The position numbers and the translations under genes are program-made. Below, one piece after another: positions 4,950 to 33,540 of a stretch of 64,000 nucleotides of DNA. This stretch comes from Selaginella moellendorffii. Its lineage: Eukaryota > Plantae > Lycopodiophyta. Position 1 is the stretch's first letter. Each line of letters opens with the position of its first letter. The notes beneath the pieces were generated by a model, which searched no databases, was not told where the DNA came from, and saw only the letters and a program-made list of their open reading frames with translations. The DNA lies in contig NW_003314272.1 of the NCBI RefSeq assembly GCF_000143415.4, positions 1,088,184-1,152,183 on the forward strand. The letters run 5' to 3'.

Positions 4950-7900
4950 GGTGATTGAAAATGTAATGCTAAGAATCAATATGGAATCATAGGTCTTTGT
5001 TTAGAGAAATTTCATAGAAATTTCAATTAAAAATTATGTGTGGACGTGGAATTCATGAAATACTTAGATTTCAAAATTGAAAGAATTCAATTTAAATTTT
5101 GCATAATGAAATTTTTGCCAGAATTTTTTGTCAAATTTGTATTAATTAATCAAGCATGGACACCTTGAGACCCTGAGCTCATGCACTTAGGAGCTTGACC
5201 TTCCAGAGCTCTAGCGACACCCAGCCCCAAACTCAAGCTAGAACCTGGACCTAGTCCATTCATGCTTGTCACATCCACCATGCATACATGGCCCCAACCA
5301 TGACTGAAATTAAGAGATAAACTGGATCACTGTATTAAGCCAACTAGGCACATGGGCTTGCGCACCTGGATATCCAAAAGGCTGGACATCCAAAAGGTCT
5401 CACTCATATTCAAAAAGGTTGGATATCTCTAAAAGGTTGGAAGATGAGTTAACATTGGGTAGAATCTTTACATGTACCCCTTTTGAACAGATTGATCTAT
5501 ACAAGGTACATGTGAATGGCATATGCTTAGTATGTATATAAATTTCCAGCTGGCAAGAGTGATCCATGTCAGTCTTTTTTACATGAATATTGATTATTGT
5601 AGAATAGCTAGAATGCCATAGTGAATCGAAAAGGTTTACATTCTGATAGTGATTTACATTCTGATTCAATCTTGCAATCCTTTTGTAGTGGTCTATAATA
5701 TTTTTATATTCAGACTTCCTAAGAACTTCTAACATCTACCCAATGGATATGGATAATGAAATTGTCTATGTGAAATGGTCATTCCCCAATGAAAGGGAAT
5801 TTTCTATAACAAATAAGAAAATTGGGAATTTCCATAACATGGGATAATGAGGAAATTTTCTTCTTTTCATTGGGAAATTTTCTTGACAGGTCAAAATTTC
5901 TCCTAATAATTCTACTGGTAAGAGAGGAAACTAATATATTTTATCTTGACTATATATTTTATTTTTCTTTTGACGAAACTCCCACCAAAGAGATTTACCT
6001 CCTAATACACAAATATATTCTAGATAGAAGAAGCTATTAAGACCTCTTTACTGTTCAAATTCATTTTTTTCTTCATATAAGAAGACATTCTCTATATAGG
6101 TGGATGTTTTTCTTTAGTGATTAATGTTATCTGTAAGTTAGGAAATATTGAGTACCATAAAGCCCTAAAATTTTAAATTAAGATTTGCAATTTGCAAATT
6201 AGTTTGTGATTGATTTTACCTACTTTTTATTAGTAAGCGAAACTATTTCACATTGGTAAGTGGTATAAGACAATGTTAAAGGTGTTAACAATCTTAAAAC
6301 TCAATTATTATTTGTACATTTAGATTGCTAATTTGTCATAAACTCACAAACAATGATCTCATAAACAACATAATTTACACGTACTATATAATGAGGAAGG
6401 GATGTGTTCTAGGGATTTATTCATGATAACTAGATGTAAATCTTATAAATTTGTATTTAACTTAAGTTAATAAATATTTTAACCTAGAGTTTAAAGAATT
6501 AAATTTAATAGAGGAGGCTAAGAAATTCATGGAAAAGCCAAGATTAATTGAGCTTAACGAAGTTATTGCATTATCTAAAGTCTCAACCCTTGCTTTAACA
6601 TCTACTTCAATCACCTCAACTTTTTCACTTAGAAAAGTTAGAATGACAAATACTATATATCAGCATGGTATAAAACTATCACCAACATATATAAAAGAAA
6701 AAATAAAAGTAGATAATTAGTTTTAATTATGAACTTCAACTAATAAATAATATCATACATTTTTTTTGTAATCCTTTTCTTTTCTGTTAATACACGAGTT
6801 ATATACTCTTTTATTATCCAATTATTAAGCAATAATACACTTAATAGTGAGATCCAAATATATTCAAAATGCATTTCAAATCTTTTGATGGCTAGTATAA
6901 CATCCTTATATGCTTAATTGCTCAGCTCTAATTATTATTACTTTTTTGGCTTTGCTTCATATATTTCTTATTGACTATATTCAAAAGTTGTTTTTTATTT
7001 TGATTAGCAGAAAAAATGGTGGACCATACCTTTAGATATTCATAATCAACCTCCTTTCCATAGATAATTTCAACATAAATATTTTTCATGAATGTTAAAG
7101 GTGCTTATCATACATTTATAATGCCATAGTAAAGGTAAAAGAATTTTAAAAGGAAAATATATTATACATGGATATAATAAGTTTTGATTTTAATTGATTT
7201 TGCAAGCTTGCTATCACTTCTTTTTATTTAGATTGGAAAGGAAACTTTGCATGATAGAATTATGTGTTCCTCAAGTTTGTTATCATCAATTAAATTGTGA
7301 ACATCCTTTACAATCTCTTTTTTTAATGAACATGGTCTTTTTTGTCTTGTTTTGGCTATTTGATATTGATAATATATTGGTGAGAACTTATTGTTAGATT
7401 GTCTTTTTTATGTATCACAAGAAATCTTAAGTACATTTAAAATATGTGGAATCTTCATATTTGGCAAGATGGTTGACCATAGCTGATTAACAAAAAAAAA
7501 AAAAAAGAATTATTCAATCCTTTTTTTATAAAGAATTTTACATACCTTCTCTTAAAAGAAAAATGGAAAAATTATAAAAGCGAGAACTAATTAATTTAAG
7601 CATACCTCTACTGATATCACCCATCCTACAATGAATCTAATTGAAATGCATAAAACTTTAACTCATAGTTAAAAACTATGTAGATGCCCATTATATACAT
7701 TCCTCTCCCATTGGGAAAATATTTCCTCTTCCATTGGGAAAATGTTTTTCAACAGCCTTAATAAACTTTGGCTCACCCATTAACTCAATCCAGCTGTTGG
7801 CAGCCATTGAATTGAGTTAAGTTCTCTGCAAGAATGTTGGCTGACGATTGCCAAGTTCCTAGAACCTGGCTGCCAGCAGCCAAGTTCTAGAGAACCCTCT

Positions 7901-13519: not shown

Positions 13520-13866
13520 TCACTACAAAACTCGATCATGGTAAAAGTTCTTCCAACATCTCTTTTGTTCTTGTGGCAAGAATCAAGACGGACCGAAGAA
13601 ACTCGAAAGATTCACGGAAACCCTGTAAAGGTTCGATTTTTAGTACATGCAAAGTGCGTTTTTTCTTTTTTAACCCGGCATCGCAAGCATTCCAAGTGGA
13701 AATGAATGACGTATTTTTTCTATAAATAGCAGGCGGGGATACGTTGTTGCTATAACAAGTATGGCGGCTGAGCTGAGCTGAGTGAACAAGCAACCAAAAT
13801 GCCACTCACCACTTGTTAAAGATTGCGAGGGTTTTGCAAATTTGGGGGAAGAGCAAAGAAGAGACC

Positions 13867-15826
13867 ATGGGGCGGTCGTTTAGATTTGTGATTCTCGGGG
13901 GCGGCGTCTCGGCGGGCTACGCGGCGCTCGAGTTCGTCAGGCTGGGCATACCGGCGGGAGATTTGTGCATCATCACCGACGAGGCTGTGAGTGCTTTCCC
14001 TTTTGTTCTTTCTTTCTTCTTCTTCTCTAAGCAGGGGAGTGTGTGATTGATTGATTGATTGACGAGGATTTCCCATTCGTGCCAGGGATTTTAAGCGCGC
14101 GCTTGTTTGTTTGATTGCTTGCTTGTGCAGGTTGCCCCGTATGAAAGACCGGCACTCAGCAAGGGCTTCTTGCTTCCTGAAGGTACACTGCCTTGATCTT
14201 TTGATCGCAGCAGCTTGCCATCCAATCTTTCGGCGTGCGTTCTTTCTCTTCTTCTTCTTTCTTCTTCTCTTCTATCTTCTTGCTTGTGGTGTTCTTCGTT
14301 TTCGGCATTTTTTTCTGAAGACAAAAAAAAAAACTGTTTTTTATATTGAAAGTATTTCAATTTCCAGGCGCTGTTCGATTGCCTGCATTCCATACCTGCG
14401 TGGGTGTTGGAGCTGAGCGATTAACTGCAAGATGGTACAAAGAGCACGGTATGAGTTTCTCTTGGTAGGAAGGATAAAAAAATTTGTGATTATCCAGGAA
14501 TCGAGCTACTGCTCAACACTCAAGTCGTGTCAGTCGACTTGAAACGACAAACGCTGCTCACCAGTGCCAAGGAAACAATCGCTTATCTCACGCTCATCGT
14601 CGCCACTGGTGCTCGCGTGCTGAGACTGGAGGAGTTCGGGGTCACGGGCGCCGACGCTCGAAACATCTTCTACCTCAGGAACCTCCACGATGCAACCAAG
14701 CTTGTCGAGGCAATGCAGAGCTGCAGCGGCGGCAAGGCTGTGGTGATCGGCGGTGGCTACATTGGCATGGAATGCGCAGCGGCTTTGGTATCTAATGGAG
14801 TCCACGTAACGATGGTCTTCCCGGAATCCCATTGCAGTACGTATCCTTTCTCTTTCGTTACGCAAAAACCTTCTTTTTTCCTTCTTTCGCAGTTGCTCGA
14901 TTATTCACGCCTCAAATCGCCACCTTCTACGAGGACTACTACACAAGGAGAGGCGTGGTTTTTGTCAAAGGCACTGTTATGTCGACGTTCGAGAGCGACA
15001 TAGATGGAAAGGTAAAACGAAACTCGTCTCGATCGCCCTCTCTAACATCGCTTTCCTGCTGCGCATCCAGGTAGCAGCCGTTGTCCTGAAAGATGGAACC
15101 CGGCTTCCGGCCGATCTAGTCGTGGTTGGCGTGGGGATCCGTCCAAACACCACCTTGCTCGAAGGTCAGCTCACAATGGAGAAAGGCGGCATCAAAGTGA
15201 ATGGCAAGATGCGAACCAGCAACAGCACAGTCTACGCCGTCGGCGACGTCGCGGCATTCCCGCTCAAGATGTATGGCGATGTCCGGCGGCTGGAGCACGT
15301 CGACCACGCCCGAAAGTCGGCAGCGCACGCAGTGGAATCCATAATGCATCCGGAGCGAGCCAAGGACTACGACTACCTCCCATACTTCTACTCCCGCGTC
15401 TTCAGCCTCTCGTGGCAGTTCTTCGGCGACAATTCGGGCGAGTGCCTGCTGTTTGGCGATCTCAAGTCGGAGAAGTTTGGAGCCTACTGGGTGGACAGGG
15501 GCCGATTGGTGGGAGCGTTCCTCGAGGGCGGCTCCAAGAGCGAGTATGCTGCGCTCGCGGTGGTGGCGAGGAAGAGGCCGATGGTGGAGGACGTGCAGCT
15601 CCTGGCGGGGCAGGGGATAAAGTTTGCGCTGGCGCTGTGCGAGGCCACTTCTTCCGACTCGCTCGTCTCGACCATGGCTGCCACTGACGACGAGAGAGGA
15701 GCCATGGCGGCTGTTGCCTCGGACTTGTTGCAGCACAGCGGATTCAAGGTCGGGGCGGGGATCGTGGTCGCTGTTGCGGTGTCTTGGGTAGCTTATTGGT
15801 ATGGCAGGAAGAAGTGGAGGAAGTGA
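13867..15826 (+). CDS. MDAR: Monodehydroascorbate reductase, tail-anchored peroxisomal type (MDAR4-like)
   Basis: ILGGGVSAGYAA, APYERPALSKG, LIVATG, VVIGGGYIGME, YAVGDVA, RRLEHVDHARKSA and YDYLPYFYSRVF; C-terminal TM followed by the basic tail YWYGRKKWRK; multiple short introns. Confidence 0.95.
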
Positions 15827-15928: not shown

Positions 15929-18900
15929 TTACAAAACCTTCTTACCAGTCTTTGTAGACAAGTTGAGGGTGCAAAACTGCATGACGTTGGTGCTGTATAA
16001 GATATGCCAGCCACCATTTTGTTCTAAGAGATGAGCATTTGCATCGCCCTTCTTAAAGTGCCTGCGTCCACCAAGTTTGCACCCCGAATGTAGATGGGAT
16101 CTGTATGCCAGCCGGAAAAACGGACACTGATCTCGTTTGTGCCATCGTTTTGGCCACTCCTGAGCCTGGAAACACTCATCCCGTTCCATCTTGAGTTGGA
16201 ACCATATCTCGGACACACAAATCGGGCCTTCGGCCAAGTGCTTCGGACGTCTCAACTGTTGGGACCACCCGTGCCTAGAAAGGGCACCCAGATCGAGCCA
16301 AGGGTGTGCCATGGAATTCCTCACGGTGGCACACGAATTAAAGAACTGTCGGAATTCTGCGCTTGAGACTTTAACATGTCTGTATCGAGGAAAGTTGACA
16401 GACTCTTCTTCTTGTTCATTCACCACTTTCTCCACTACCAACTGTTTGTTATCCCACTGTAGAAACATAAATTCGGTATGTGCCAAGTCGAGGGCAGCAA
16501 GTTTGCGCAGCTCAAACCAGCACGGGAGCCAGTCTGCAACAGTGTACCGCCAGTGCTGCCATTTCAACTCTGCCATGAACTGTGGGTCGTGAGAAAACAA
16601 ACCAGCTGCGGTGCCTGCACGATCGTAAAAAATCTTCATCTTGGCCTCCTTCACTCTCAGCTGCCACCCCAAGAACCTACATATCCCATAATCCATAAAA
16701 CCTGGAAGATTGTTCCGGAAGAGGCATATATGCAGCTGGTCACGACCATCCGAGTGTCTGTTGAAAACAATGGTGTAGGTGTACCCCCTCTTGATACTCG
16801 GACTTCAAAATAAGAATTTCCAGTATACCTCCCATGCAGGTGTTCAGAATCAGACCATCCTTGATCGTGTGCCACCAGTTGGATCACAATTGCTTGAACT
16901 GGCTTGAAACCTGAAACCGTCTCTTCCAGTAGTATCACGTCCTTCATTGGCACAAGAGGCTCTATTGCTTGAGAGTTATCTAAGTGAACAGGAACTGCCA
17001 GCTGATTCTTGCATCCAGGAGTCAATCTGGACGAGTAGTAGCTTATGGTTTGCAGCTGGGATAGAACCTTCATAAGGATAATCAAGGTGAGTCAATACGC
17101 CATGAAAAGAAACGACATACCTCCAAATCATTGGGGGAGATGTGAACTTTGCTACCACTGAGGTATAGACGTTGTAATGACTTGCACTCGCTAAGCCCTG
17201 GAACGTTGGAATTGGAAAGTTTGCAGCAGCCAGATAAGTTGAGTGAAGTCAAGCTTGATAGTCTGTCGACACCATGTATTTCCTTGAGATTGATGCAATT
17301 GCATAGAATCAGTTTCTCCAGGTGGTGTAGCTCTCCCAGGTCTCGCAAAACTTCAAGTTGAAAGCACTCCCCCACGTCCAGAACTCGGAGTTGCCCGGGT
17401 ATGCTTTTCAGTGCTCCTGGCAGCCCACTTACCTTGGTTAATAGGAAGCAGTGATCAAGCCGAAGTTGTTCTGTTTTGTCAAGATAGGAAACAGAGAGAG
17501 GCACGGCTTGGATCCGGCTATAAGCACTGTTAAGCCTCGTCAATGAACCGAGGCCTCCAAAAGCATCCGGCAGTTGAACAAGAGCACATCCTTCGAGATC
17601 CAGCTTCAACAGATTTTTCAGGTTCTCAAAGCCTTGAGGGAGCATGCTGAATTCCTTACAGTTCTTGAGGATCAGCTCCTCCAAGCTCACCAGCTTGCCA
17701 AAATCAGGTGAGAGCTCTGTAAACTGCGAGCACTCCGCCATGTCGAGGTTAACAAGGCTCCTCAGCTCACCAAAACCTTGATTTAACTTCACGATACCAC
17801 ATCGAAACATGTGGAGAGACTTCAAGTGAGACAGCCCAGCAAACGACGTCGGCAATGAGCTAAGGCTCATGCAGAAGGAGATATCCAGATTCTCGAGCTT
17901 TTTTATGTTGCCAAATGCCCCAGGGAGACTAGAAACTGACGTGCCAGCCAGATCAAAGGTTTCCAGCCTTTCAAGGTTGCCAATAGAGTCAGGGAGCTCC
18001 TGAATTCTGGAACACCACCTTAAAGATAGCCTTCGGATCCCGCAGTGGCTGGGAAAGTCTGGTAGCAGAGTCAAGCTTTTGCATCCGGTAAGGTCGAGCA
18101 TCTCAAGCTTTTCAGTCAAGTTGGCAAGTCGTGTTAGAGCGGAACAAAATCTCAACGAGATACTTCTGATATCTTTGCATAGCTCCACTTGTTTGATGGT
18201 TGTCAAGCTTTTGCATTTATCCAACATCAACTCCACCAATTTGTCCATTACCACCTGAAATGAATGGTGAACTTATGAGTGGTGATTTAACCTTTTGCGA
18301 CTTGTTACCTTGTGCTCGTGATGGTCATCCCAAAGCCTGGTGATGTTGCTTCCAGAAAGGTCCAAGAAGCTGATATTGTCTTCGAGGCAGGAGATGAATG
18401 ACGAAGGCAGTACATCCAAAGTCATGCGTGTGTCTCGTCTTGAGACTTTGCTGCCAAATAAGCTCATTGTTCTGATCTTTGGAGTCACCTGGAAAAGAAC
18501 CCGGAGCTACATTAACTGCTGAGTCACGTCTCATAACTTACCATGCTTCTGGTCAAGAGTTTATCAGCGTCTTTGTAGTTCCTCCTCTCTCCAATGCTTT
18601 GGGATTCCCTGTTCACTTCCTCGCGGGCCACGTCACGTATGAGATCGTGAGACGGCATCAACTTCAAGCTTTCCAGCCGCAGTAAGTGCTTGTCAACAAG
18701 ACTTTGATATCATGGTTCATCATGCTCTCCTCGACGTCTTCCATGGCTTCCCAGATCCAGCAAACGCTTGCCCTGCTCACCTCTCCAAAGAAGCAGCAAA
18801 TGTCGAGAAAGATTTCCCTCTCTCTTTGATGCAGCGGCTCCAGGCTGATGCGCAACTTGTCCACAACTTCTGGATAGGAGCTTAACTTGCTCTTGGCGCC

Positions 18901-19524
18901 TCTCCAGTCGCGCTCATCGCTTTTCCCTTGGAGCATCAAACCAGCCATTTCGAGCACCAGGGGTACGCCCTTGCATTCGCCCACAATCTCTTCCACCAGG
19001 CTTCGATCCAGTCCGGCGTCCAGTTTGGCATGCTGCTCGAAAAGCATCCTTGCATCCTCGTGCTTGAGTTGACCCACTTCATGGATGAAGGTGAGGCGCC
19101 CGAGGGTGTCTCTGTCTCGGCTGGTCACAATCACGCGGCTGGAACGTCCCAGAGGAGGGATTCAGGAGCTGGGCGTGGCTTTCCACATCGTCAAGCACCT
19201 GCAAGACGTTGACGCTGGACAGGCGCTTTTGCTGGAACAAATAATGTCGAGCTTTGGACTCGCTGAGTTCCACCTTTGAGATGTCTTTGACAATCCTGAC
19301 AAAGAGGGCATTGGTGCCACGGCCCTTAACCTCCTCCCGGACATTCCTCACGAAACAAGATCCTGTTGAAAACCTCCTCGGCAAGTCTCGTCTTCCCAAT
19401 TGCGCCTTGCCCAGTGATACCAACGCTTGTCACCATCTCCGCACTCTTTCCTATTCGGGATAGGAAATCACGAATGTACTCTGGAATGCCAGCCGCTGCT
19501 GGCGCTACGCCCGGGGCCTACTCT
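15929..19524 (-). pseudogene. NB-ARC-LRR (NLR) with extra C-terminal domains, frameshifted
   Basis: P-loop GQGAIGKT (19389-19412), CFVRNVRE, kinase-2 VLQVLDDV, SRVIVTSRD, CKGVPL, EIFLDICCFF and MHD-like SHDLIRD, spread over several frames. LRR ORF 17082-18254, then about 400 aa of non-LRR sequence. Confidence 0.88.
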
Positions 19525-21733
19525 TGTTGACTAATAAGAACTGAACACGAATATTCCCTCAATACTCCCACTCAAGTTGAGCTCGCGATACTTCTTTTCT
19601 TCACGCCCAGAGCTTGTACGTGTCGCGCGAACACTGCTGGTGGAAGTGCCTTCGTGAATATATCTGCCACCATCTCCGTGGTAGCACAGTAGACGAGTTC
19701 CACTTTCTTCACCGCTACCTGTTCACGAATAAAATGAAACTGAACCTGGATGTGTTTTATCCTGCGATGAAATCTTGGATTCTTCGTCAAGGCAATAGCT
19801 CCTTGATTGTCGCAATGCAGAACCGTTGCCTCCCGTTGCTCGTAGCTTAGACCGTTCAGCAGAGTCCTGAGCCAAAGAATTTCCTTCGCTGCTTGGGTCA
19901 TCCCGATATACTCAGCCTCTGTGCTCGAGAGAGCCACGATTGGCTGCCGCTGGCTGCTCCATGTAACTGCTGCGCTGCCCACGTAGCCAGAAGTTGATTT
20001 ACGCTGATCAACTTCCCCTGCCCAGTCTGCATCCGAGAATCCCTGCAGCTTGAGTTGAGGCTGCTCTTGTTTTGTGTAGCACAAAACATAATCGGCAGTC
20101 CCCTTCAGGTAACGAAACACACGCTTAACTGCCTGCCAGTGCTGGAAGCCAGGATTTGCCAGGAACTGTGAAACCACTCCCACTGAATAGGCGATGTCTG
20201 GCCTGGTACAAACCATGAGGTAGACTAAACTGTCTACCATCTGCCTGTACGGGATCCTCTCCATCACTGCTTTCGCTGCTTCTGTCTGAGGTGCCATGTC
20301 CTTACTAAGGTGCATGCCAACTTCCATTAGCGTTGATGCAGAGTTGACGTCACTAGGCTTGAATTTCTGGAGGAGCTCTTCAATATATTTCTTCTGAGAC
20401 ATTTCTAGTGTGCCCTTCCTCCTGTCTCTGAAGATCTGGATGCCAAGACAATACTTGACGCTCCCAAGGTCCACCATCTTGAATCTCGAGCTGAGATCTT
20501 TCTTCAGTTGATGAATCAGCTTCTTGCTTTTGCTGAGGAGCAAGCAGTCGTCCACGTACAAAGCCAACAGCACCAGGAGAGCTCCCACTTGCTTAATATA
20601 CACATTAGTGTCTGCAGAGAGACTCCCGAAGCCAAGGGCAAGAAGAAACGAGTTCATCTTTGCGTACCAGGCACGAGGCGATTGCTTCAGGCCGTAGAGG
20701 GCCTTCTTGAGCTTGCACACCAACTGCTCTCGTCCTTTGGCAATAAATCCGGCTGGTTGCTCAATGTAGACTTCCTCCTCCAAGTCGCCATTCAGGAACG
20801 CCGTCGTTACATCCATGTGCTCGACGTGCATGTCTTCGTGAGCTGCTAAGTTGTAGAGAAGTCGAATTGATGCAAGCTTCACCACTGGTGAAAAGGTCTC
20901 ATAGAAGTCAACTCCTTCAACTTGTGAGAATCCTCTCGCAACAAATCTGACTTTGTAGCACGTGTCTCCATCAGGTCCTGTCTTGAGCCGCAAGAGAAAC
21001 TTGGTCTTGATCACCTTCCTCCCAGGTGGCAGCTCCACAAGATCCCAGGTCTTGTTCTCCATCAATGAGCTGTACTCAGCTTGACGAGCAGTGCGCCACT
21101 GATCCGCATCAGATCCGGCAAGAGAAGTGCATCTCGGCCATGGCTGAAGAGAAGTAGAAGCTGGTTCTCGCCTTGCTCCCCATGCTAGAGTTGGCAAAAT
21201 AAAAGACTGGATCGTAAGAGGTCTCAGGAATTGGAACTGTCACTGATCGGTCTCTAGCAGCCTTGGTTTCTTGTCGAGAAGCCCGCTTAGCTGCTTGCAT
21301 ATCCAGCTGCTCCCTGTATTGACGCCCAGCCTCTGTGCGCGCTCACGGCCAGAACGTCTCAAACTGCCCTCACTATTTTTAGCCCTGGTCCTGCCAACAG
21401 TGCGCTCACCACCGTGGTCTTCCTCTCCGCCGACTGGGTTTGCTGTTCTAGCGCTCCCATGGTCGTCCACGTCCTCCTGGTTGTCTTCCTTGCTACTTTC
21501 TGCTGTCCTGGCAAAGTTGGCCGACTTGTTCTTTCTTGCTGCCACTCTCTTTGCCTCAGCTTTTCGCGCCTCCTTGGCTTTCTTGGCCTCTTCGTCTGTG
21601 CAATCTCGTGCCCAGTGCCCTGGTTTCTTGCAAATGTTACAGCGATCATTCTTATTTTTCTTCTTGAACTTTTCTGGTTTGCTGCTCTCACCCTGATCGT
21701 TTGTTGGTCCTAGTCTGTCCCACACTGTGACAG
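19525..21733 (-). mobile_element. Internally deleted Ty1/copia retrotransposon
   Basis: Gag zinc knuckle CNICKKPGHWARDC (ORF 21240-21725); RT-RNaseH ORF 19572-21197 (YKVRFVARG, LYGLKQSPRAW, YVDD, SDADWAG, KHIQVQFHFIRE); PPT-like GAGTGGGAG followed by a 40-bp LTR remnant TATTGA...TCAACA (19525-19564). Protease, integrase and the 5' LTR are missing; the 5' boundary is approximate. Confidence 0.9.
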
Positions 21734-21781
21734 ATCATTTCCCCTTTCCTGCAAAGAGTGCCAATTCTTTCTCATTCGAGC

Positions 21782-22550
21782 TCACTTGCCCTGACTTGAG
21801 AAAACCCTCCAACGCTGTGAGGTCGATTTGAGAGGAGCGAGGAGCATTCTGGGGACGATGTCGTGCCTGCAAACAACGTGTACGAAGTGATCGTCCCAGC
21901 CTTGACTCTGTGCAAGCTTGCTCAGCTTCACCTCGCCCACAAATGGCATCCCAAAGGTGACGCACACAAATCGCAGCTTGTGGAGCTTGATCGCGGTGGC
22001 GGTGCGACTGAGATAAAGAAGCCACAGCGTGGCCAGGGCTGCAATGGCGCCTCCGAGTGAGTGGCCTGTGAAGATAATTATGTTTTGACTGTCTTCCAAC
22101 TTCTCAATCTGCAAATGCGGACCTCGATCCGGAAGGGGATAAGGAAATAAGTAACAACTTACGGTGTTCGTGAGTTTGCCATCTCTCCAGATTTCAGCAA
22201 ATCTTCTTGTGAAGCCTCTGTGAGCCAGGGATTCAAAGAACAAGTCACTGGAACTGTTGCAGCCCCAATGCGCTGGTGCCTGCAGGCCTTCCCAGAGTGG
22301 TGAAAGCCCATAGTCGGAATCCACCACCACATCTTCTAGAACTGCCGTGCCTGGGAATGAGATCCATACCGTTTCTTCCTCAGCGTCATGGTAAAACCGT
22401 TCGCCCTTGTCAGCAATCCTGTAAGCCCTGGCCGAGCAGTCGAGCGACTTGAGGACAAGCTCCCCGTTCACCAGGAGCTCCGCATTCTTTGTCTGCTCAG
22501 GATTAGCATCTAGGCTTACATCCAAGAAGAGCACAAGTACTCACCTCCAT
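21782..22550 (-). pseudogene. EDS1/PAD4-like lipase (alpha/beta-hydrolase) domain, truncated at the copia insertion
   Basis: ATG at 22550 with introns 22493-22544 and 22109-22162 gives METKNAELLVNGELVLKSLDCSARAY...HRGFTRRF...IIFTGHSLGGAIAALATLWLL...CVTFGMPFVG...FVHVVCRHDIVPRMLLAP. Confidence 0.85.
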
Positions 22551-22802: not shown

Positions 22803-24964
22803 CTAGCGTGCGCTCGTAGCAGTCAAGGGAGAAGCTGCGTAAGAAGAGCCGGTTTGAGACGTCGTCGTTGTCGTCGTCGTTGTCCAACCATGGTGGCGAA
22901 TCTGTCCAAAGTAGTTGGGACTGTCTACCGTGGTGAGCGGCTCTAGCTCGAGGTAACCCATGAGCATCGCAACCACGGCACTCATCGTTGGCCGGCTCCC
23001 TTCAAATTCTCGGCTACACAGCAATGCGACGTGCGTGGCTCGGTGAGCCTCTTCTGCGATGTAAAACTTTTCCAGTCTAGGATCGATTAATTCTTCGAGC
23101 TTTCCAGCACCAAAGAGGCTCCAAGCCTGCCACCAGAAGAAACAAGTAAGAAACACCAAGCTTGAGATCATGTTTTACCCATTGCGCAAGGATTTCTTCT
23201 TCCACAGGAAGTGTGTCATCCATGCACTTCCTGCCGCTGATGATCTCGAGAACAAGAACTCCAAAGCTGAAAACATCGACTTTGGAAGATAATCGCCCTC
23301 GAAGAACGTACTCGGGTGCCATGTATCCACTATTACACACTGGTGAGTTCCAGAATAACAAGCCAGAAAGGAGAAACGCTTACACTGTCCCGGCCACTCT
23401 CGTGGTTGTGTTTTCTTTCTCCACTCCCGCCAGCTTGGAGATTCCAAAGTCGGAGATCTTCGGCTGGAGCATTTTGTCAAGGAGGATGTTGCTGGCCTTG
23501 ATGTCCCGGTGTATAACCTGTTCGTGTGATTCCTCGTGGAGATAAGCGAGGCCTTTCGCCACTCCCACGATAATCTGGAAGCGAGCTGGCCAATCTAAGA
23601 GTAAACTCTTTCCTGGCAATGACTACCTAGTTACAATGAGCTTAAAGGAAAGATGGATTCATTTACCGAACAGTGTTTGATCGAGGCTCCCTTTCTCGAG
23701 AAACTCGTAGACGATAAGCCGATGATTCCCCTCGCAACAGTATCCCTCGAGCATCACAAGATTTTTGTGACGAATGGCGGTGATGATATCGATCTCATTC
23801 ACAAACTCCATCTTTCCTTGCTGAGACCCCACCGAAAGCCTCTTCACAGCAAACACGGTTCCATCGCCAAAGAAAGCCTACACACACGAGCTGACAAGTT
23901 TAGAAGTTGGCAAAGTTTATATTTTCTGTGCTTGCCTTGTACACGGTGCCAAATCCGCCTTGTCCGAGTTTGTTTCGGTCGCTAAAGTCTTCGGTGGCCT
24001 CACACAAATCCCGGTAAGAAAACGCGATGGGTCCTCTCGAACTCCCTGAAAACACAAAGCTTCAACAAAGCGAGAAGAAGAGGAGGAAATGTCCTACTTT
24101 GCAGTTCTGAAGAAGGAACTCGAGGCAACCCTCGTCGTCGTCGTCGTCGGGACCTTCTGCGCTTGACGAGCAGAAGTCCGGCAACTCCCAGGATCAAAAA
24201 CACTGGCACCACAACACCAGCCACAATGGCTGCTGTGTTGCTTGATCCGCCACTGCCACCGCCTGAAAGAACGAATTCTCTTCTAGCTCAAAGGTTTGAT
24301 TTGTACCTGGAGTGCTAGCAGGAGGTCGAGCCGTTGGAGGGGGAACCACTGGAGGTGGAGCTGGAGCGGAGGCATTTGGACCCAATATTCCTAGCGTCCC
24401 TGGATAAACAATGATGGAAGAACTTTGACATTGGAAAGAAACAAGGAAAAACTTTGAGGCAAGAAACCAAGAAGCAAACCCGATGGCAAGTCTCTCGTAA
24501 AATTGCTATTCTCGAACCGCATGTTGCATCTTTCTGCTGTGGAATTCCTCCAGAAACGGGCACCAATTGGAAATCTCTGAGTGAAACTCAATGAATCCAT
24601 CGTCTAGAAGTTGATCGAAACTTACAGCTCGGGCATTGGCATACGCCTGCTGGATGCAAGATGAGCAGCTGGGCTGGTCCGACATGTTGTAGCAAGCCGT
24701 GTGCGCGTAGGCGATGTTGGGAAACGCACCATATCCGAGAGAAGTTGCAAATCCATTGGAGGGATTGAACCCCTGGAGGAATTCGAAGACCGTGTCGAGA
24801 TTTCGCTGGAATGGGCTGCCTTCGCTGGTGTTGGCGGTGTTGTAGTAGAGAACGTTTGCTAGTTGACCTGGATCCGTGACGTCCACTGGTCGCTGCTGCT
24901 GTGCTGCGAGAGGCCGTGTGCCAAAACAAAGAATGAGAAGAAGAACCCACCACAAGCAGCTCAT
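22803..24964 (-). CDS. Single-DUF26 cysteine-rich receptor-like kinase (CRK copy 1)
   Basis: Signal peptide, [13 protein letters not shown], Pro-rich linker, TM plus [38 protein letters not shown] and RPTMS; appears intact after splicing. Confidence 0.9.
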
Positions 24965-25029
24965 CTCTAATCCTATATTTCCCTCCCGGCCATAGATCAT
25001 ACATCTAGTTTTGTCAGGATTTCATCTTA

Positions 25030-26652
25030 TATGATTTTTACCCTCGCTTGCTCGTAAAGTGCGTTTAACAGTTCCATGTCACGTCCATTGTCCCGATCGA
25101 GATTAGAGCTTCTCCTTCGCGAATTATCGGTTGGAAATGAGAAACACGAGGGACCCGAGGTCGAGGTAGCCGAGCAACATCGCCAAAACGTCGCCCATTG
25201 CCGGTCGAAGCTCTCCAGTCTTGGGTGCAAAGCAAAGCAACGTGAAGCGTTCTGTGGACTTCCTGGCGACATAGTCATTCCCGACTCTCTCATCGACGCA
25301 CTCGTCCAATCTCCCAGCCTCGCTCAAGTTCCAAGCCTACACCACAGTGTCACCGTTAAGTTTGTATGGAAGTTATCGATACAATGCCAAACTTTCGAGC
25401 GGCACCAGCAGTTCTTCCTTGTCCGTTCGTGTTATGTCCACGCGAGCACGACTCTAAAGCTGAACACGTCGGCCTTGGACCCACCAATCAGACAAACTTA
25501 ACACGCACAGAACTTAAAAACTTAAAAGTGCCAGCCACGTTTGTGCTCGTGAAACCTTTCTCGATGTCAAAGAGGTTTGAGATCCCAAAGTCAGCGATTT
25601 TGGGCTCCAAAGTGCTAGTCAAGAGGATGTTGCTGGCTTTGATGTCTGATTCGAGAAGATCGCCACAAATAAAAAGGGAGAGAAGAGAGCGAACAAAGAA
25701 AACCAAGAACACGCAAGAACACAAGCAGCGACACGAATCCGATCGAAAGGCGACCGCCGTGTAGATACGCAAGGGCACTGGTGGGCAATCTGGATTCCTA
25801 TCATGATCCAATATGAAAGTGAAAAAGGATGAACAACTTACCAGGCTCCCTTGCTCCAAAAATTCATAGACAAGAAACCTGTCGTCCCCTTGCACAACAA
25901 GGTTCCTATGCTGGACGCTGGAGCTCATTCACAAACTCCTTATCTCCTTGTAGCGAGAGCTTCTTTACTGCCACTCCTCGGCCTACAAAAAAAGCTACAT
26001 GAAACCAATTTTAGCTTTCCACCTTGCTTTCCAAGAAAATCAAAGTTTGTAGACTCAAAGACTACAAAGAAAGAAGTTTTAGCTATGGACGACGAAAGAA
26101 GAGTGTTCCCACCACAGCACCAGGTATAACGCCCTTTCTCCTCCCAGCTGTAGCTAGAGCTGGATTTAGAGATGAAATGTTTGGACCCGGAGGAGAGTTA
26201 TTACTAACTTTTATGGTTTTACCAGGAACGATCGCAAAGCTGAAAGGATCGTATCTCATGCGACCTTTGAAAGGTCTGGTTGATCCAAATGACACCACCA
26301 GTGGCATACCAAAGAACGCTTTGGATGTTCATGTAGGCGTCCTGGATGCACTGTCCACAGCTCGGCTGGTCGGACATGTTGTAGCAGCCACTGTGTGCGT
26401 AGACAGCGTGTGGAAAGCTGCTGTAGCCAAGGCACGTCGCATAGCCGCCATAGCCAAGGCTCGCTGCATAGCCGTCTGGCGGATTGTGCTTGTAGAGGAA
26501 CTCCAGGACGGCCACCACATTTCGCTGGTAAGTGCTGTTCGCGCTGGTGTTTGTTGGGAAGTAGTATACCAGATTTGGCTCTGTGTCTGGGTTTGGATCG
26601 TCTGGTGAGATAACGAGCGGCCAGCGACACATGCCAAGATCAGCCACAGCAT
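25030..26652 (-). pseudogene. CRK pseudogene (copy 2) with many deletions
   Basis: DUF26 exon nearly identical to copy 3 but frameshifted after the signal peptide; kinase fragments ([25 protein letters not shown]) are separated by deletions. Confidence 0.85.
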
Positions 26653-27316
26653 CCTACATTCTGCGGCTGGAACTAGAACTCTACATTTCGTTTTTCAACT
26701 CTTGCATTTTTTTCTCACTGCGAGAGTTCCATCTCAACTTCGGGCAATCAAAATGTCAGGAGGAGAAAAAGTCAATGAGCACGATTGCTCAAGCTTTCAA
26801 CGCTGGCAAAGAATGAATTGCAGCTCTAGTGGACAAATGGTCAAGATATTGAGGTGCTTGACGTTGTCATTAGTGCGACAAATAGCTGGATCCAGCTCGT
26901 GGAGTTTCAACTTCACGATCTCTACGGACAACCCAAGGAAAACCTACTACGCGGCTTGTCCAGGGAATCGCTAGTACTTATACTTGTCCGGGAGCTCAGT
27001 ACCTGGCCAAAGTGAAGGTTTTTATAATCGTGGCTAATTAACAGCTTCTTGCCCAACTCAAAAACCTAGAGCTGTTACTATACTCCTATATTTCCAACTC
27101 AAAGAACACGATGAAGTGGCGTGGATGGCGCTCATCACTGGGTTTGCGCGGCAGAAAGATTGCAAGAGTGCAAGCTAACACGATGGTTTAAGAGAAACTC
27201 TAGTAAAATGTGTTCGATCCAGCTTCAGCGTACCTTTCTTCTTTATTTCCTGGGCTTGAGAAGACTTGGACAAGATCTTAAAGTCGGCAGAGTCCGGAAA
27301 CTTCCGACACTTTTGC

Positions 27317-29370
27317 TCAACGCGGCATGTCCATGGAATTCAAGTAATCGCTACTTGTAGTCGTTGAGGAGCTCATTACCAGGCCAAAGTGAAAGGGAGC
27401 TTGGGTGGGAAGAGCGCCAATCTCGAGATATCCCAGCAACATGGCCACAACGTCACTCATTGTTGGTCGAGCTTCCTCATGTTCTTGCGTACACAGCATG
27501 GCAACACGGAGCAGCCTAGAAACCTCGTCCACCGCGTAGTCACCGCCCAGCCTCTTGTCAATGCATTCGCTCATCCTGTTTGCCATGACGAGTTTCCAAG
27601 ACTGCAGCCATGACACCATTGGTTATCGGTTCTAATTTGATCGACTTACCAGTTGAAGTAAGAGCTCTTCTTCGGCTGGCAATGCCGGATCCACGCACTT
27701 TCTGCCGCTGGCGATCTCCAGGACGAGGATTCCATAGCTGAAGACATCAGCTTTGGTCGTCAATCGCCCTCGAGTTGCGTACTCGGGTGCCATGTATCCA
27801 CTAGAAGAATGGCGTGAGTTTCGTCCAGACTGTGGAAGGAAGAGGAGATCAAACTTACAGTGTGCCGGCCACCTTTGTGCTCGTGAAGCCGAAGCCTTTG
27901 TCCAAGTCGAAGAGCTTTGATATCCCAAAGTCGGAGATCTTTGGCTGCAGCTTGTCGTCCAAGAGGATGTTGCTGGCTTTGATGTCTCTGTGGATAATCT
28001 GAACATGAGACTCCTCGTGCAAGTAAGCAAGACCCCGAGCTATCCCAATGGCGATTTGAAAGCGTGAGTGCCAGTCAAGGACCACATTTGATCCAGAACC
28101 TGCGGATGGAATTTTTAATTTTGTTAGAAGGAGAAACAAAGGAAGAAGCAAAAGATTATTACTGAAGAGCGCCCGGTCAAGGCTGCCTTTGTTGAGGAAC
28201 TCGTAGACGAGCAGTCTTTCATCTGCCTCGACACAATAGCCTTTGAGCCTTACAAGATTTCGGTGTTGGATTCCTGTGATAATGGTGATCTCGTTCACGA
28301 ACTCTCTGTTGCCTTGGTTGGACTGCAACGAGAGCTTCTTCACTGCTACTTGCGAGCCATTGTTTAAGGTGGCCTACAAGATTTAGACAGATAGTTCTAC
28401 TGTGCGACTTCACATAAAAAACAGCTAACCTTGTAAACAGTTCCAAATCCACCTTGACCGAGCTTGCTTTCCACAGAGAACCCCCTGGTCGCCGCACACA
28501 AATCCTTGTAAGAAAAGACCACATGGAGACCTTGATCAAGGTGGGTCCATCTTCAGCAAGTTAGAAGCACTTCAGATTTCCTTACCCTTGATGATCCCAA
28601 AGTCTTCGCATTTCTCCGATTTCTCCGATTCTCTTCTTCGCCTTGTTAACAAGAAGAACCCAAGAACAGCACAAACAAAACAAAACACAGCTCCTCCCAC
28701 CACAGCACCAGCTATCACGCCATTTCTCGTCCCAGCATTTTGCTTGCCAGTAGCTGGAGCTGGATCTGGAGGAGCTGGAGCTGGATCTGGAGGAGCTGGA
28801 GCTGGAGCTGGAGCTGGATCTGGATCTGGATCTGGACCTAAAGCTAGACCTGGACCTGGTGCTGGAGCTGGAGATGAAATGTTTGGACCCACAATGCCCA
28901 AAGTACCTAGAAGAAAAAGAAGAACGAAGGTATTGCACTTAAATTTTTGTGGTCTTACCAGGAACGATCTCAAAGCTGGAAGGATCGTATCTCATGCGGC
29001 ACCTTTGAAAGGTTTGGTTGATCCAAATCGCACCACCAACGGCATACAGATTAACACTTTGGATGTTCGTGTAGGCGTTCTGGATGCACTGTCCACAGCT
29101 CGGCTGGTCGGACATGTTGTAGCAGCCACTGTGCGCGTAGACAGCGTTTGGGAAGCCGCCATAGCCAAGGCTCGTTGCATAGCCGTCTGGGGGATTGTTC
29201 TTGTAGAGGAACTCCAGGACGGCCACCACATTTCGCTGGTAAGTGCTGTTCGTGCTGGTGTTTGTTGGGGAGTAGTATACCAGATTTGGCTCTGTGTCTG
29301 GGTTTGGATCGTCTGGTGGCGCTCGAGCTACCGAGCGGCCAGCGACACACGCCAGGATCAGCCACAGCAT
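27317..29370 (-). CDS. Single-DUF26 CRK (copy 3) with an Ala-Pro/Asp-Pro repeat stalk
   Basis: [11 protein letters not shown] signal peptide, [18 protein letters not shown] linker, TM and a complete RD kinase; the frame is consistent using GT-AG introns, including 28531-28585. Confidence 0.88.
28746..28872. repeat. Hexamer (GCTGGA/TCTGGA) tandem array encoding the Pro-rich stalk of CRK copy 3
   Basis: Directly visible tandem hexamers; the minus strand encodes PAPAPGPG...[13 protein letters not shown]. Confidence 0.9.
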
Positions 29371-31589
29371 CCTAGAGTCTGTTGTTAAAACTCTACATTT
29401 CCTTTTTGGTTGCATTTTTTTTTTCACTGTCCGTCTTGAGACTTGCTATGGCGTGCAAAAGGGTGAGTGTTATTGTGGCAGATTTCACTCACAATATGGT
29501 GTCCATGTGGCAGTTTCCTATTGGTTCAGCATTAAATGTCATTTGGATGCCTCATGAATACCCCATAATATGAACAATGTACTATACATAGATGCCACAT
29601 ATCATCAAATTTGACCCCATAAGATAGGGATTCATCAGGTCATAAGGCTTAGGCGATGCGTTGCGCAGAAGGGCGGTCGCGCATTGAGCATTGTGGGTCA
29701 GTGCAGCGCAGCACCCTCACTCTCTCTGGCCTAGGGCACCCACGAATGATGATGAATTTGTAGGAGACCTTCCTTGCCTTAGCGCCCTGCTTTAGTGCTC
29801 TGTTATTCTATGCTTTATAAAATCTGTTCTTGGCTATGGTGTAGGGGATATTTCGGGTGGTATGGAGAGCTGCAGTGTTGCTAGGGATTGATAGCAATGG
29901 CTGCGATCACAGCTCCAGATTCCAGTGTTCTGGAGCAATTCCATCACTTGTCATCGGCTTCTCCCCTGCGTTGCCATCCAACTCGACGACCTCCATCCTC
30001 AAGAATTGTGGCGCAAGATGGAGGAAGCAGGAGGATTCGACGATCGCCTAGATGCTGCAGCAGGTAACAATGGGAGCATTGATGATTGCGAACAGCACAG
30101 TGGCAGTTGGCAATGCGGGGAGGACACGGCGATGGCCATCGATGATGATCAAGGCTACCACACTCCCAAATTTTAGATGGAGTTCACTTACGCTTGCTAT
30201 GAACACTATGTTAAAAGAGGTGTGCCAAAAAAGGATAATTCAGTTCTTTTGCCATGAGTGCCAAGAGCAAGATGTGAGAATATAGTGCTCTAGATAAGGT
30301 AGTATGGTTCGATTGTCGATTTAGTTTGCAACATTAACAACTTGCTAGAATTCATGGGATGAATGGGCCATGAATGGCTCCATTCCATACATAGCATGGG
30401 TCATTGCTATGGGCATGATGCCCCATCCGGGGCATAAGGATTGGATATTCATAAAATATTCTATGCCTGTGTTTTTATCACACTCATAATACATATGGAC
30501 CAATAACAAGCATGTGAGTGAAATCCACTGTTGTAAAATCCACCCTTTTACGAATTGCACGCCATACTTGCAAAGAATGGGTTGTAGAATGAGACCTTGA
30601 ATATATAAATTTGAAAGCAAAAATAATTTAAAGCAGTCAATTCAAATGTAAGATAGTGTGCTCATGTTTCCCTCATAACATAGTTGAACGGAGAATGACT
30701 CAATAGAATATAGATGTTGTCCATCTGCAATGTAAGCAGCTAAGATCATTTAAATGTTGTAGATTGATCTCTTTTCATCCATGTTTTGAAGGTTTGTTCC
30801 AATTAGGAGGGTATATGCCATGTTTGCCAAAAGGAGTTTGTGAAAGGAGATCCATTTGCAATCCATGCTATACCATCACCCAAGTTAATGCTGGTTGTCC
30901 AAGTTAATGGAAACCAAGATGGCATATATAGTAAGTTTGTTAAATCAAGATGCATGAGCAAGTGTGAGACATATTTGACACTCTCAATATAAAAGCACCA
31001 TGGCTGCCATCATACTGCTCGGAGAAGATGGTCCTAGAAGTGGCAAAAGGTGGAGATTGGAAAGATGGCATTTCTAGTTGATAAAGATGGAGTTTGTACC
31101 AATTGAACATGTGTTTTAATCCATATGGCACTAGGAGAAAAGATCCATTGGGATATTCCTTTGCAATTTGGGTGCCCCTATGAGACAAAGTATAGAAATC
31201 TAGTTTTAGGAGATTTGGTTGGGAATATGAAATATAAAGAGGAGGAGGATGACAAGGAGTTAGGTTGACCCTTACCTTTTTTCTCAAGCATCTAAAAGTG
31301 TTTTTGTAAAATTATAATGGAAAGTGTTTTCCAAAGGGATTTCATGGCTTGTCAATGGCAACATAGTGGCCTGAAGCTTGTGTGTGAGCATTCCACAGCC
31401 TACTAGTGGCAATATAGTAAGCTTAAAATAGTGATTTTGAATCTAAGAGTGTTTTTGAGAGATATTTTACTAGGAGGATTTAGAGGTTTTGAGGGAGAAT
31501 TCTACAGTAGGAGAGAGTGGTTCATAGCTTATTAACAGCAATGCAATGGCAATCAATAGAAGAGCATTCTTGATTTACTTCCTACAAGG

Positions 31590-33540
31590 GTGTGTGACAA
31601 TGGGGCAATTGGGGGTAATTGCACGTTGCCTAACACTTTGGAACCTCAATTTTACTAGTTCTATGGTGGTTTGTAGCAAGCTAGTGAAAACATAGTGGCC
31701 CCAACTCCTCCCCTCTTTCTTTATCCTTTCTCGAATAAGATTCCTCCTATATAATGCAACAAGGAATTGGGACTCTTAGTTTGACTAATTGGTCATTCTA
31801 GCTAACAAGTGAGTTGGGTAGTCTTGAATTTGCCTAGCCTTTATTGTTGTAGTTACTTTCATGTGTTTTGGAGGGACTTGCTCAGGTGGGCCACATGGTA
31901 AATTTAGGATATTCCACAAACACATGGGGAAATAGTGGTGAACTTCATTGTTTGGTATACCTTGGTATCAGAGAAAAGAGTTAACATCTTGCATATATAA
32001 ATGTAGGGGAGGAGTTTGGAAGATCTTGCTATTCTTTAATCTAGAAAGTAGTGAGTTGGTTTGGAAAGATTCTCAAAATAATTACACTAATGCTATGTTT
32101 ATTTACCCTTGTCTCGTGGTATCTATGAGAATGGTAAATGAAAGTTTAATTTCTAAAGCATTAGAGGACAATTCTTGGAGAAAATCTAAGTAGCACACTT
32201 AGATTAAACATCAATAAGGAAGAATTAGTCAAAAAAGAGGTGATAAAAGGATTCCAACCATCCATTAGTGGACTTATAAAAGGTGCTACAATAACATCAC
32301 CAACAACAATAATGCCAATAGCTAGGCTACCAAAAGGGTGGTTAAAACAATGGATTCTTCAATAAAGAAAAATTCCAAAATCTAGGACTATAGTAAACCA
32401 AGAGGAGCTATCATATGATGATTTCACCTCCTTCTATAGGGTTAGAGAATTTTATAAAGGAAGAAGGCATAGATTTTAATTGGCATTTAGTAGAGCAACT
32501 TCATAATGCCATAATAGGAAGTTCTTATAGGTGAAAGTGTGGAATCATAAGAGTCCTTTAAAATTTGGTTATGGACGTGGAAGTAATAACCATAGGGGAT
32601 GAAAATTGCAATCCTCACTATTAAATCATTTAGAAAGTTCCAATAATAAGAACACCAACAACCCAAAGGCATATGAAAAGAGGATGTGGCCAAGAGGTGG
32701 GATATTTGCTTTAAGGATCAATCAATTTATAATTGAGGGGGCTTAGGGGATCTAGAGGATGCTTCTAGACCCCTTGATAAAGGAACTTCCATTTTGGTTA
32801 AGATGTAAAAGAATTGGACTAGGTAGATACTTAAATGTTCACCAAAAAGAAGATCTTTATGTTCTAGCTACTTATAATTTTATATTTGGTGCGTTTGCTT
32901 ATAAAGGATCACTAAAATGTTCAAAGGGTTAAAAAACCTTGTTGCACTATATGGATGTGATGCCACTATCTTTGGCAACTTTAAATTGCCTAATTTTAGA
33001 CCAGATGCAAAACTGGTTGGCAACCCTTTTTACAACAAAATAGGTGAATGGCTGGTTAGCCTAGAACACTTTTCTATGGACTAAAAGTGTAATATCCACT
33101 AGAGTCTAGTGAAAGTTTGGAGATTAGTTTTTCAATTTAGATAGTTAAAGGCTCCTACATGAGCTTGTGAGAAGGACTCAAAAGGACAGTGAGATTGTCT
33201 AAACTTTTGCAAATGCCCTAAGTCAATTTGTATGTTCGAGAATAATGTTCTTAATCTACTTTTTGCAAGGTTATGTGATAGTGGGGCAATTAAGAATGGC
33301 TTGTATCCAACTAATGGAAACATAATAGCCCCAAACCATCCCCTCCCCTTAAAGTACCTTTCTTCATCCTCTCTTGCACAAAATTCTTTTTGCATAATGC
33401 AATAAGGATAGCTTGACCAATTAATCTTTCTAGTCAATGAGTGAGTTGGGTAGCCTTGGATTTGTCTAACCTCCCATGCTGTAGCTACCCAAGTGGGCCA
33501 CATGGGAGATTTAGGATATTCCATAGACACATGGGTGAGT
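31590..33540 (+). repeat. Diverged direct repeat pair (about 31590-31930 and 33270-33540) in a decayed-transposon region
   Basis: Shared blocks in the same order: tggggcaatt, ataatgcaa, gtgagttgggtag, gtgggccacatgg, atttaggatattcca and acacatggg. Confidence 0.6.

Follow-up and report, generated by a model that had tools for sequence, protein, structure and literature searches.

Organization of the locus

The sequence analysed here is a window of 64,000 nucleotides from the lycophyte Selaginella moellendorffii, which corresponds to scaffold GL377576.1 (100% identity over 20.3 kb), and the region of interest is the stretch from 15929 to 22550. On the minus strand of this stretch, the list of open reading frames (ORFs) and Pfam matches reveal a lipase domain, a copia retrotransposon fragment, an NB-ARC domain, a leucine-rich repeat (LRR) region, and an extra tail, in that order. 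An initial annotation had interpreted this succession as a candidate single-chain immune receptor descended from one ancestral gene, in which an EDS1/PAD4-like lipase was joined to a nucleotide-binding LRR receptor (NLR). All of the parts that it named are present on this strand, its start coordinate is exact, and its upper coordinate (22550) is an ATG backed by spliced contigs. However, comparisons at the sequence level make it very probable that the locus consists of the remains of two adjoining genes on the same strand, an EDS1-family gene and a TIR-NLR gene, and not of one fused receptor. The lipase is now in line with the NB-ARC domain only because approximately 3.5 kb between them was lost. 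In sister copies of the locus on another scaffold, GL377675.1, the homologues occur as two separate genes, the arrangement that the initial annotation itself had named as speaking against a single chain. Its assignments of the lipase to the EDS1/PAD4 type and of the NB-ARC domain to the TIR type stand, as does its view that this copy is dead, whereas the single ancestral lipase-NLR gene does not.

A truncated EDS1-family gene

The first of the two remnants is a truncated EDS1-family gene of 220 codons (21782..22550, minus strand), supported by Pfam Lipase_3, matches to solved structures, and spliced contigs. Its three exons (22550-22545, 22492-22163, and 22108-21782) are defined by contigs and separated by two GT..AG introns (22544-22493 and 22162-22109), placed after codons 2 and 112, that are likewise seen in contigs, and the gene closes with a TGA stop codon at 21784-21782. 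The lipase ORF (22534..21782) matches Lipase_3 with an E value of 9.7e-19. In a HMMER search of solved structures, the lipase core from GHSLGG to HDIVPR aligns to PAD4 (1.2e-17) ahead of EDS1 (5.7e-16 to 2e-13) and SAG101 (3.4e-8), in agreement with the PAD4 resemblance noted by the initial annotation, while fungal triacylglycerol lipases score only 0.04 or worse in the same search. The resemblance to EDS1 in the first helix was also recovered: VNGELVLKSLDCSARAY is aligned by HMMER to AtEDS1 residues 8-28, although this short stretch is not significant alone. Structures, library matches, and the trees described below all identify the lipase as EDS1/PAD4-type and not as an ordinary triacylglycerol lipase.

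The stub retains the first helix, the GHSLGG nucleophile elbow, and the HDIVPR aspartate motif, and ends just after the latter. Homology to EDS1/PAD4 and to the sister copies stops at ~21815 (blastn, and MAFFT against GL377675.1), from where the rest of the lipase is replaced by copia sequence, consistent with the earlier remark that the C-terminal part is lacking; the last ~10 of the 220 codons are copia-derived. The alpha-H helix, the region of the catalytic histidine, and the whole EP domain are absent. EDS1 uses the alpha-H helix to form heterodimers, and the EP domain (PF18117) is said to be the unique hallmark of the EDS1 family. The window therefore contains no complete two-domain EDS1-family ORF but only the 220-codon stub, and PF18117 has zero matches in any window ORF, the homologous segment being copia. 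Without the catalytic-histidine region, the alpha-H helix, and the EP domain, the stub cannot work like EDS1.

Sister copies retain the segment missing from the window

Scaffold GL377675.1 carries the unit cysteine-rich receptor-like kinase (CRK), EDS1-like gene, TIR-NLR gene twice in tandem, and these copies are 92-97% identical to the window. Positions on this locus (L001) follow its own numbering, in which copy A spans ~700-7051 and copy B extends from ~9550 to the end of the locus. Comparison with this second locus shows that both copies keep the segment replaced in the window. In each of them, the lipase-like domain extends further, in collinearity with AtEDS1 residues 113-327, and includes the region aligned to the AtEDS1 alpha-H helix, a region that the window has lost; after the lipase-like part comes a 56-nt phase-0 intron (L001 1942-1997). 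A search of the linker missing from the window for an EP domain finds one in both sister copies, with Pfam EDS1_EP matches of 4.3e-16 for the first half and 2.8e-5 for the second, and with matches to EDS1 (2.9e-12) and PAD4 (4.7e-12) in the PDB. The alignments of the two halves abut and are collinear across the break (EDS1 ...503 and 507...).

The EP domain closes with a stop codon followed by AT-rich DNA. The spacer from this stop to the start of the TIR domain measures ~0.65 kb, discounting an insertion of ~1.1 kb in copy A and a gypsy-like insertion of 4.8 kb in copy B. The TIR domain (Pfam 1.4e-20) shares one ORF with the P-loop in copy A, and this ORF is aligned to ROQ1 residues 8-245 at 8.6e-28; in copy B, the TIR domain starts at its own ATG (MAAIKYEVFISHRGPD, L001 16837). 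The succession of EP domain, stop codon, spacer, and TIR domain with its own ATG argues for two ancestral genes, and the layout predicted from it is an EDS1-like gene followed head-to-tail by a TIR-NB-ARC-LRR gene.

The nearest database protein is a 77-residue S. moellendorffii model with 96% identity. NCBI names a 462-residue Selaginella model "LOW QUALITY PROTEIN: protein EDS1B-like"; this model was unusable as a basis for the analysis, as the 56-nt intron is read through in the wrong frame. The insertion in the spacer of copy B (L001 11686-16497) is ~75% identical to gypsy-like elements at 34.3-38.7 kb and 47.1-54.8 kb of the window, and the window has assembly gaps at 42766-42946 and 47735-47834.

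The copia fragment

Positions 19530..21814 (minus strand) are occupied by a Ty1/copia fragment that is internally deleted, lacks long terminal repeats (LTRs), and is recognized by RVT_2 and zf-CCHC. It comprises the C-terminus of gag with a CCHC zinc knuckle (21725-21240, minus strand; zf-CCHC 4.7e-6) and a reverse transcriptase/RNase H region (21197-19572, minus strand; RVT_2 2e-71), while protease and integrase are missing. Direct repeats of at least 40 nt (seed 12) were sought across 15-24 kb, and the search returned none, thus no LTRs were found. The piece is a fragment and not an element, and with neither LTRs nor repeats it is not datable or boundable by LTRs or target-site duplication. 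Its right edge is approximate (19505-19570), and homology to the sister copies resumes at ~19450-19500. On GL377675.1, the segment L001 1413-4950 has no counterpart in the window. In place of these ~3.5 kb, which cover the final third of the lipase-like domain together with the EP domain, spacer, and TIR domain, the window has the 2.3-kb copia fragment. As would be expected for a multi-copy family, contigs over the copia part show mismatches and loose ends.

The TIR-NLR remnant

The NB-ARC remnant of the TIR-NLR gene lies at 18664..19500 (minus strand), with a Pfam NB-ARC match of 2.1e-8 in the ORF 19134..18664 and the P-loop GITGQGAIGKT at about 19422-19390. The domain is readable only across three frames. 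A three-way alignment with the sister copies places frameshifting deletions of 20 nt at ~19362, 5 nt at ~19161, and 1 nt at ~18695, and an in-frame deletion of 9 nt at ~18583. The homologous P-loop in copy A shares its ORF with a TIR domain, which supports the assignment of the NB-ARC domain to the TIR type. As described initially, the NLR remnant has no N-terminal domain in the window, where the TIR domain has been deleted. Of the features of a TIR-NB-ARC-LRR protein (TNL), the window therefore has NB-ARC and LRR and is missing a TIR domain in the same gene.

The linker and LRR region (17082..18540, minus strand) is identified by Pfam LRR families and contigs. Three introns of the NLR remnant (18539-18487, 18306-18253, and 17118-17066, minus strand) are seen as joints in contigs of runs X1, X2, and X3. 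The LRR ORF (18254-17082; 390 codons) is intact and matches ten Pfam LRR families, among them LRR_14 (8e-25), LRR_13 (RPS4B-like; 7.6e-8), LRR_4, and LRR_8. Compared with the sister copies, an in-frame deletion of 105 nt (~18428) costs it one LRR repeat.

Beyond the LRR region, a tail of ~1.1 kb (~390 codons; region 15929..17065, minus strand) contains the motif HDQGW and is read in two ORFs (17085-16657 and 16696-15929); a 4-nt indel at ~16784 relative to copy B of GL377675.1 splits them. Pfam returns zero matches for the tail even at an E value of 10, and no C-JID was detected. Its Atlas scores (0.79 and 0.91) represent low recognition and are leads only, to an uncharacterised fungal cluster (0.91) and an F-box cluster (0.88). 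A single-sequence AlphaFold2 model of the tail is beta-rich, but its pLDDT (predicted local distance difference test) of 35.7 is too low for a fold search. The tail is transcribed, with a contig of run X1 spanning 16700-17065. A monodehydroascorbate reductase (MDHAR) gene at 13813-15826 on the plus strand converges on the NLR remnant, the ORF ends being ~100 nt apart.

Transcripts from both remnants

Contigs overlapping the stretch come from 20 public runs, which are taken as RNA given their small contig sets and spliced joints. Both introns of the EDS1-like stub are removed in mismatch-free contigs from four runs of four studies, and the spliced contigs fix the start at ATG 22550 (MET KNAELLVNGE...). 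Two of the stub contigs cross the breakpoint into copia gag, to about 21419-21457, and thus derive from the window copy and not from GL377675.1. Spliced transcripts of the NLR remnant begin near 19519. Contig depth, a poor measure of expression, is 61-217 for the lipase transcripts versus ~4-21 for the NLR transcripts, a roughly 3- to 35-fold difference. No contig bridging the lipase and NLR parts is present among the assembled runs, and the stop codon of the lipase ORF lies 2.3 kb ahead of the P-loop.

A high-depth contig in run X2 (record 5; 18 mismatches) departs from the window at 17437. This point corresponds to the tandem-duplication junction on GL377675.1, where window position 17434 meets 25054. 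Transcription thus appears to include the truncated LRR end of copy A, which may serve as the leader of the second CRK gene.

Phylogeny of the lipase-like domain

An exhaustive phmmer run of the window lipase against 1.84 billion representative proteins returned 471 matches. Behind the Selaginella fragment, the top matches are proteins of ~630-690 residues from Ginkgo that carry Lipase_3 and EDS1_EP. In a tree of 128 lipase domains, Selaginella is sister to all 90 seed-plant EP-type sequences (SH-like approximate likelihood ratio test, SH-aLRT, 97), apart from 37 other class-3 lipases, so that the lipase groups with EP-bearing proteins and not with the other class-3 lipases. A 47-row lipase-domain tree splits the family together with Selaginella from 14 other lipases (94/78) and places Selaginella beside the Ginkgo pair Gb_07529/07530 (91/95); in an approximately unbiased (AU) test, the placement as sister to all is not rejected (p 0.37). 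A two-domain tree (636 columns) also joins Selaginella to Gb_07529/07530 (99/97), within a set that holds angiosperm EDS1 (95/92) and is separate from the PAD4 and SAG101 clades. The three trees conflict on the position within the family, as sister to all seed-plant members or as sister to the Ginkgo pair. Attachment to the short Ginkgo branch of an unrooted tree is also expected if the root lies on the Selaginella branch, and the Selaginella protein is accordingly best read as EDS1-type, at or near the base of the family.

A word-index search with the window lipase ORF recovered only fragments at 40-49% identity and no relative from a lycophyte or fern, and the same kind of search with the TIR/P-loop ORF recovered nothing beyond the Selaginella model. 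Lipase relatives without an EP domain include those of the liverwort Riccia, the lycophyte Diphasiastrum, and green algae. Diphasiastrum complanatum is the only other lycophyte among the named lipase matches; its EP-less Lipase_3 proteins KAJ7550454.1 and KAJ7550457.1 are encoded by two nearby copies and group with liverwort lipases, not with the EDS1 family. The 38 EP-less relatives include one fusion to AAA_16, one to nSTAND3, two to caspase domains, and five to FYVE domains.

Inactivation of the gene pair

All three copies are disabled, through different lesions. In the window, the EDS1-like gene is truncated and the NB-ARC domain has three frameshifts, which bears out the initial annotation's judgement that this copy is disabled. 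Two lesions are common to copies A and B: the first helix has lost 2 nt, and in EPLDIANY-Y-R of the EP domain a TAA codon replaces Tyr. Copy A additionally has a 1-nt deletion at the start of the TIR domain, is broken after the P-loop, and has a truncated LRR region, and copy B has a frameshifted TIR domain and has lost the P-loop region. The N-terminus and ATG are intact in the window, where neither N-terminal lesion of copies A and B is present, so inactivation took place independently in the two lineages.

In the lipase coding part shared by the window and copy A, there are 6 nonsynonymous and 9 synonymous differences, with a ratio of nonsynonymous to synonymous rates (dN/dS) of 0.19 (p 0.002 versus neutrality). 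Between the same copies, dN/dS is 0.44-0.56 for the LRR region and 0.58-0.77 for the NB-ARC domain. Because the lesions differ by lineage and the lipase dN/dS is 0.19, we infer that the genes were still intact in the ancestor common to the three copies, and that the EDS1-like one was under constraint.

These observations are consistent with the following history. The first gene of the ancestral pair would have encoded an EDS1-family protein with a lipase-like and an EP domain, and the second, ~0.65 kb downstream, a TIR-NB-ARC-LRR protein. The pair may formerly have worked as in seed plants, with the EDS1-family protein sensing TIR products. In the window lineage, the 2.3-kb copia fragment would then have taken the place of ~3.5 kb and joined the lipase stub to the NB-ARC remnant, either through an insertion with subsequent deletions or through repair-mediated capture. 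The remnant of the first gene is still transcribed and correctly spliced, encoding a 220-residue stub at most, and that of the second is transcribed at lower depth with its three NB-ARC frameshifts. The window is a third, independently inactivated, still transcribed relic of a lycophyte EDS1-family/TIR-NLR pair.

The gene upstream of the pair is shared as well. A CRK gene (22803..25054, minus strand) with Stress-antifung and Pkinase domains ends with a stop codon ~250 nt before the EDS1-like ATG, and window 25054-22596 aligns to L001 1-656 and also to L001 7054-9507. This gene belongs to a tandem array of CRK genes and fragments at 22803-32000 of the window (minus strand), and RNA contigs span the last CRK gene and the EDS1-like gene.

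Alternative explanations

Several observations weigh against a reconstruction as two genes. The TIR exon of copy A has no in-frame ATG, which is attributable to its 1-nt deletion, and a start codon is seen only in copy B, where the TIR domain is frameshifted. There are zero fully intact copies in the assembly, so two functional genes are reconstructed from three differently broken ones. GL377675.1 may be either the other haplotype or a paralogous locus, with a synonymous divergence of 0.06-0.08. The runs are only presumed to be RNA, on the strength of spliced joints, and a rare read-through from the lipase across copia into NB-ARC is compatible with the contigs, as assembly breaks in the repeated copia sequence. 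In favour of an ancestral gene that fused an EDS1-type lipase directly to NB-ARC-LRR and that copia merely interrupts, the lipase, NB-ARC, and LRR parts share strand and order, and the lipase is cut exactly where the NLR has no N-terminal domain. A class-3 lipase-NB-ARC-TPR protein even exists in a green alga, Symbiochloris irregularis (KAK9790573.1), with Lipase_3 at 64-202, NB-ARC at 398-597 (23.4 bits, at the Pfam cut-off), and TPR at 633-721. Nevertheless, a fusion is highly improbable given the EP domain, stop codon, spacer, and TIR domain with its own ATG that intervene in the sister copies, and given that the window lipase ORF stops 2.3 kb before the P-loop and that the transcripts assemble separately with the depth gap noted above. 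No land-plant protein pairing NB-ARC with Lipase_3 alone was found among 56 scanned of the 150 best lipase matches. Among these 150, neither the scanned proteins of >800 residues, one alga excepted, nor the 38 EP-less relatives have an NB-ARC domain, and the lone other NB-ARC case is a model from Arabis alpina, which also has EP and TIR domains. That model (KFK28610.1, 2011 residues) consists of two Lipase_3 plus EP units followed by TIR-NB-ARC-LRR and is probably several merged gene models. Membership of the bryophyte-type class of NLRs that carry an alpha/beta-hydrolase (Hyd-NLRs) was also considered. These proteins have been described in liverworts and some mosses, with a link to EDS1 offered only as a possibility, and their NB-ARC domains group close to bryophyte TIR-NLRs (PMC11218826, PMC10952240). 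This explanation is already refuted by the sister copies, in which the hydrolase and NB-ARC domains sit in different genes, the hydrolase carries an EP domain, and the NLR carries a TIR domain.

Two further proposals accept two genes and differ on their origin or present role. The EDS1-like/TIR-NLR pair could have been transferred horizontally from a gymnosperm-like seed plant, since the two-domain tree joins Selaginella to the Ginkgo pair inside the EDS1-type set and the 47-row tree does likewise, no other lycophyte or fern EP-bearing relative surfaced in the searches made, and Diphasiastrum yields only an EP-less lipase. The genes also lie in a species for which about 2 NLRs and no TNL have been reported (PMC3782705). 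Against a transfer stand an identity of just 41-45% to the nearest Ginkgo protein, the larger rooted tree in which Selaginella falls outside all 90 seed-plant members, the AU test that leaves this placement standing, and the fact that the attachment to a short Ginkgo branch, without a root, is expected also with the root on the Selaginella branch. The genes are furthermore embedded in a native CRK array, and their introns of 52-56 nt have a size typical of the S. moellendorffii genome. With rare homologues of the EDS1 family reported from ferns as well (PMC12512272), we consider a transfer unlikely. It is about as doubtful, if not slightly more so, that the 220-residue stub has been kept as a working protein such as a decoy or regulator. 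Its transcripts are correctly spliced in four runs from four studies and deeper than those of the NLR remnant, its N-terminal frame and ATG are intact, unlike those of copies A and B, and its dN/dS of 0.19 versus copy A is low. However, approximately one third of the alpha/beta-hydrolase fold is gone along with the histidine region, alpha-H helix, and EP domain, and the tail is read from copia gag. A low dN/dS can also date from before the truncation, contig depth gauges expression poorly, and an expressed CRK gene ends 250 nt upstream.

Implications for the origin of EDS1 signaling

The inactivated gene pair bears on the age of the EDS1 family. Its origin has been placed in the seed-plant ancestor (bioRxiv 10.1101/572826), and EP-domain proteins have been stated to be restricted to seed plants, and TIR signaling in seed-free plants to require some other means (PMC10834447; bioRxiv 10.64898/2026.05.20.726525). 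A single TIR protein has been reported for S. moellendorffii (PMC9806590), and no report of a Selaginella EDS1 homologue was found in the literature searched. The Selaginella gene models are fragmentary (77, 98, and 462 residues), and surveys based on proteomes consequently missed the family. Three lycophyte EDS1-family relics, each beside a TIR-NLR, point to a family that arose no later than the vascular-plant ancestor, or else to an old gene transfer. On present evidence the chances are about even that the EDS1 family predates seed plants, that the vascular-plant ancestor had an EDS1-type gene head-to-tail within ~0.65 kb of a TIR-NLR gene, and that S. moellendorffii is losing this module. 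Under that reading, other accessions or other lycophytes would be expected to retain intact, and possibly working, pairs.

That a gene for a TIR receptor lies next to one for a sensor of TIR products suggests a way in which the module could have arisen. EDS1-family genes adjoin a TNL on one strand in a crucifer too, as the Arabis model KFK28610.1 illustrates. More remotely, the tight linkage, together with the algal lipase-NB-ARC-TPR protein, could be a hint that N-terminal domains of STAND (signal transduction ATPases with numerous domains) receptors gave rise to EDS1-type lipases. The apparent single-chain EDS1-NLR in the window is itself an artefact of a transposon-associated deletion.

Comparison with known systems

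The green algal protein KAK9790573.1 is the known protein closest to the architecture proposed initially, being a single chain whose Lipase_3 domain matches the window lipase at 8e-14. It differs in having no EP domain and TPR instead of LRR, and in trees it falls among EP-less lipases and not specifically next to the EDS1 family. The likeness to Hyd-NLRs is superficial and consists of a hydrolase fold upstream of NB-ARC-LRR in a seed-free plant. On a comparison of architecture and not of sequences, their hydrolase is the N-terminal domain of the same protein, whereas that of Selaginella belongs to a separate, EP-bearing gene.

Similarity to TIR-NB-ARC-LRR proteins such as ROQ1 and RPP1 is more extensive. 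The TIR-to-P-loop region of copy A aligns end to end with ROQ1 8-245, and NB-ARC and LRR families including LRR_13 are present. The window differs from these proteins in the absence of a TIR domain, in its three NB-ARC frameshifts, and in a tail that stands in place of a detectable C-JID. The other gene resembles the EDS1 family in its class-3 lipase-like domain with GHSLGG and HDIVPR and in the alignment of its first helix with AtEDS1 8-28. In the sister copies, the resemblance extends to collinearity of the lipase-like domain with AtEDS1 113-327, including SPYRPFG after the alpha-H helix, and to the LVEPLDIANY motif in the EP domain. The trees group the Selaginella domain with EP-bearing proteins (32-90) versus other class-3 lipases (14-37). 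Unlike known members of the family, it is found in a lycophyte, as a single Selaginella lineage in place of separate EDS1 and PAD4 partners. In the window copy, the EP domain is gone, as is a third of the lipase-like domain, and the sister copies are frameshifted, contain a nonsense codon, and have a shorter and weakly similar C-terminal half of the EP domain.

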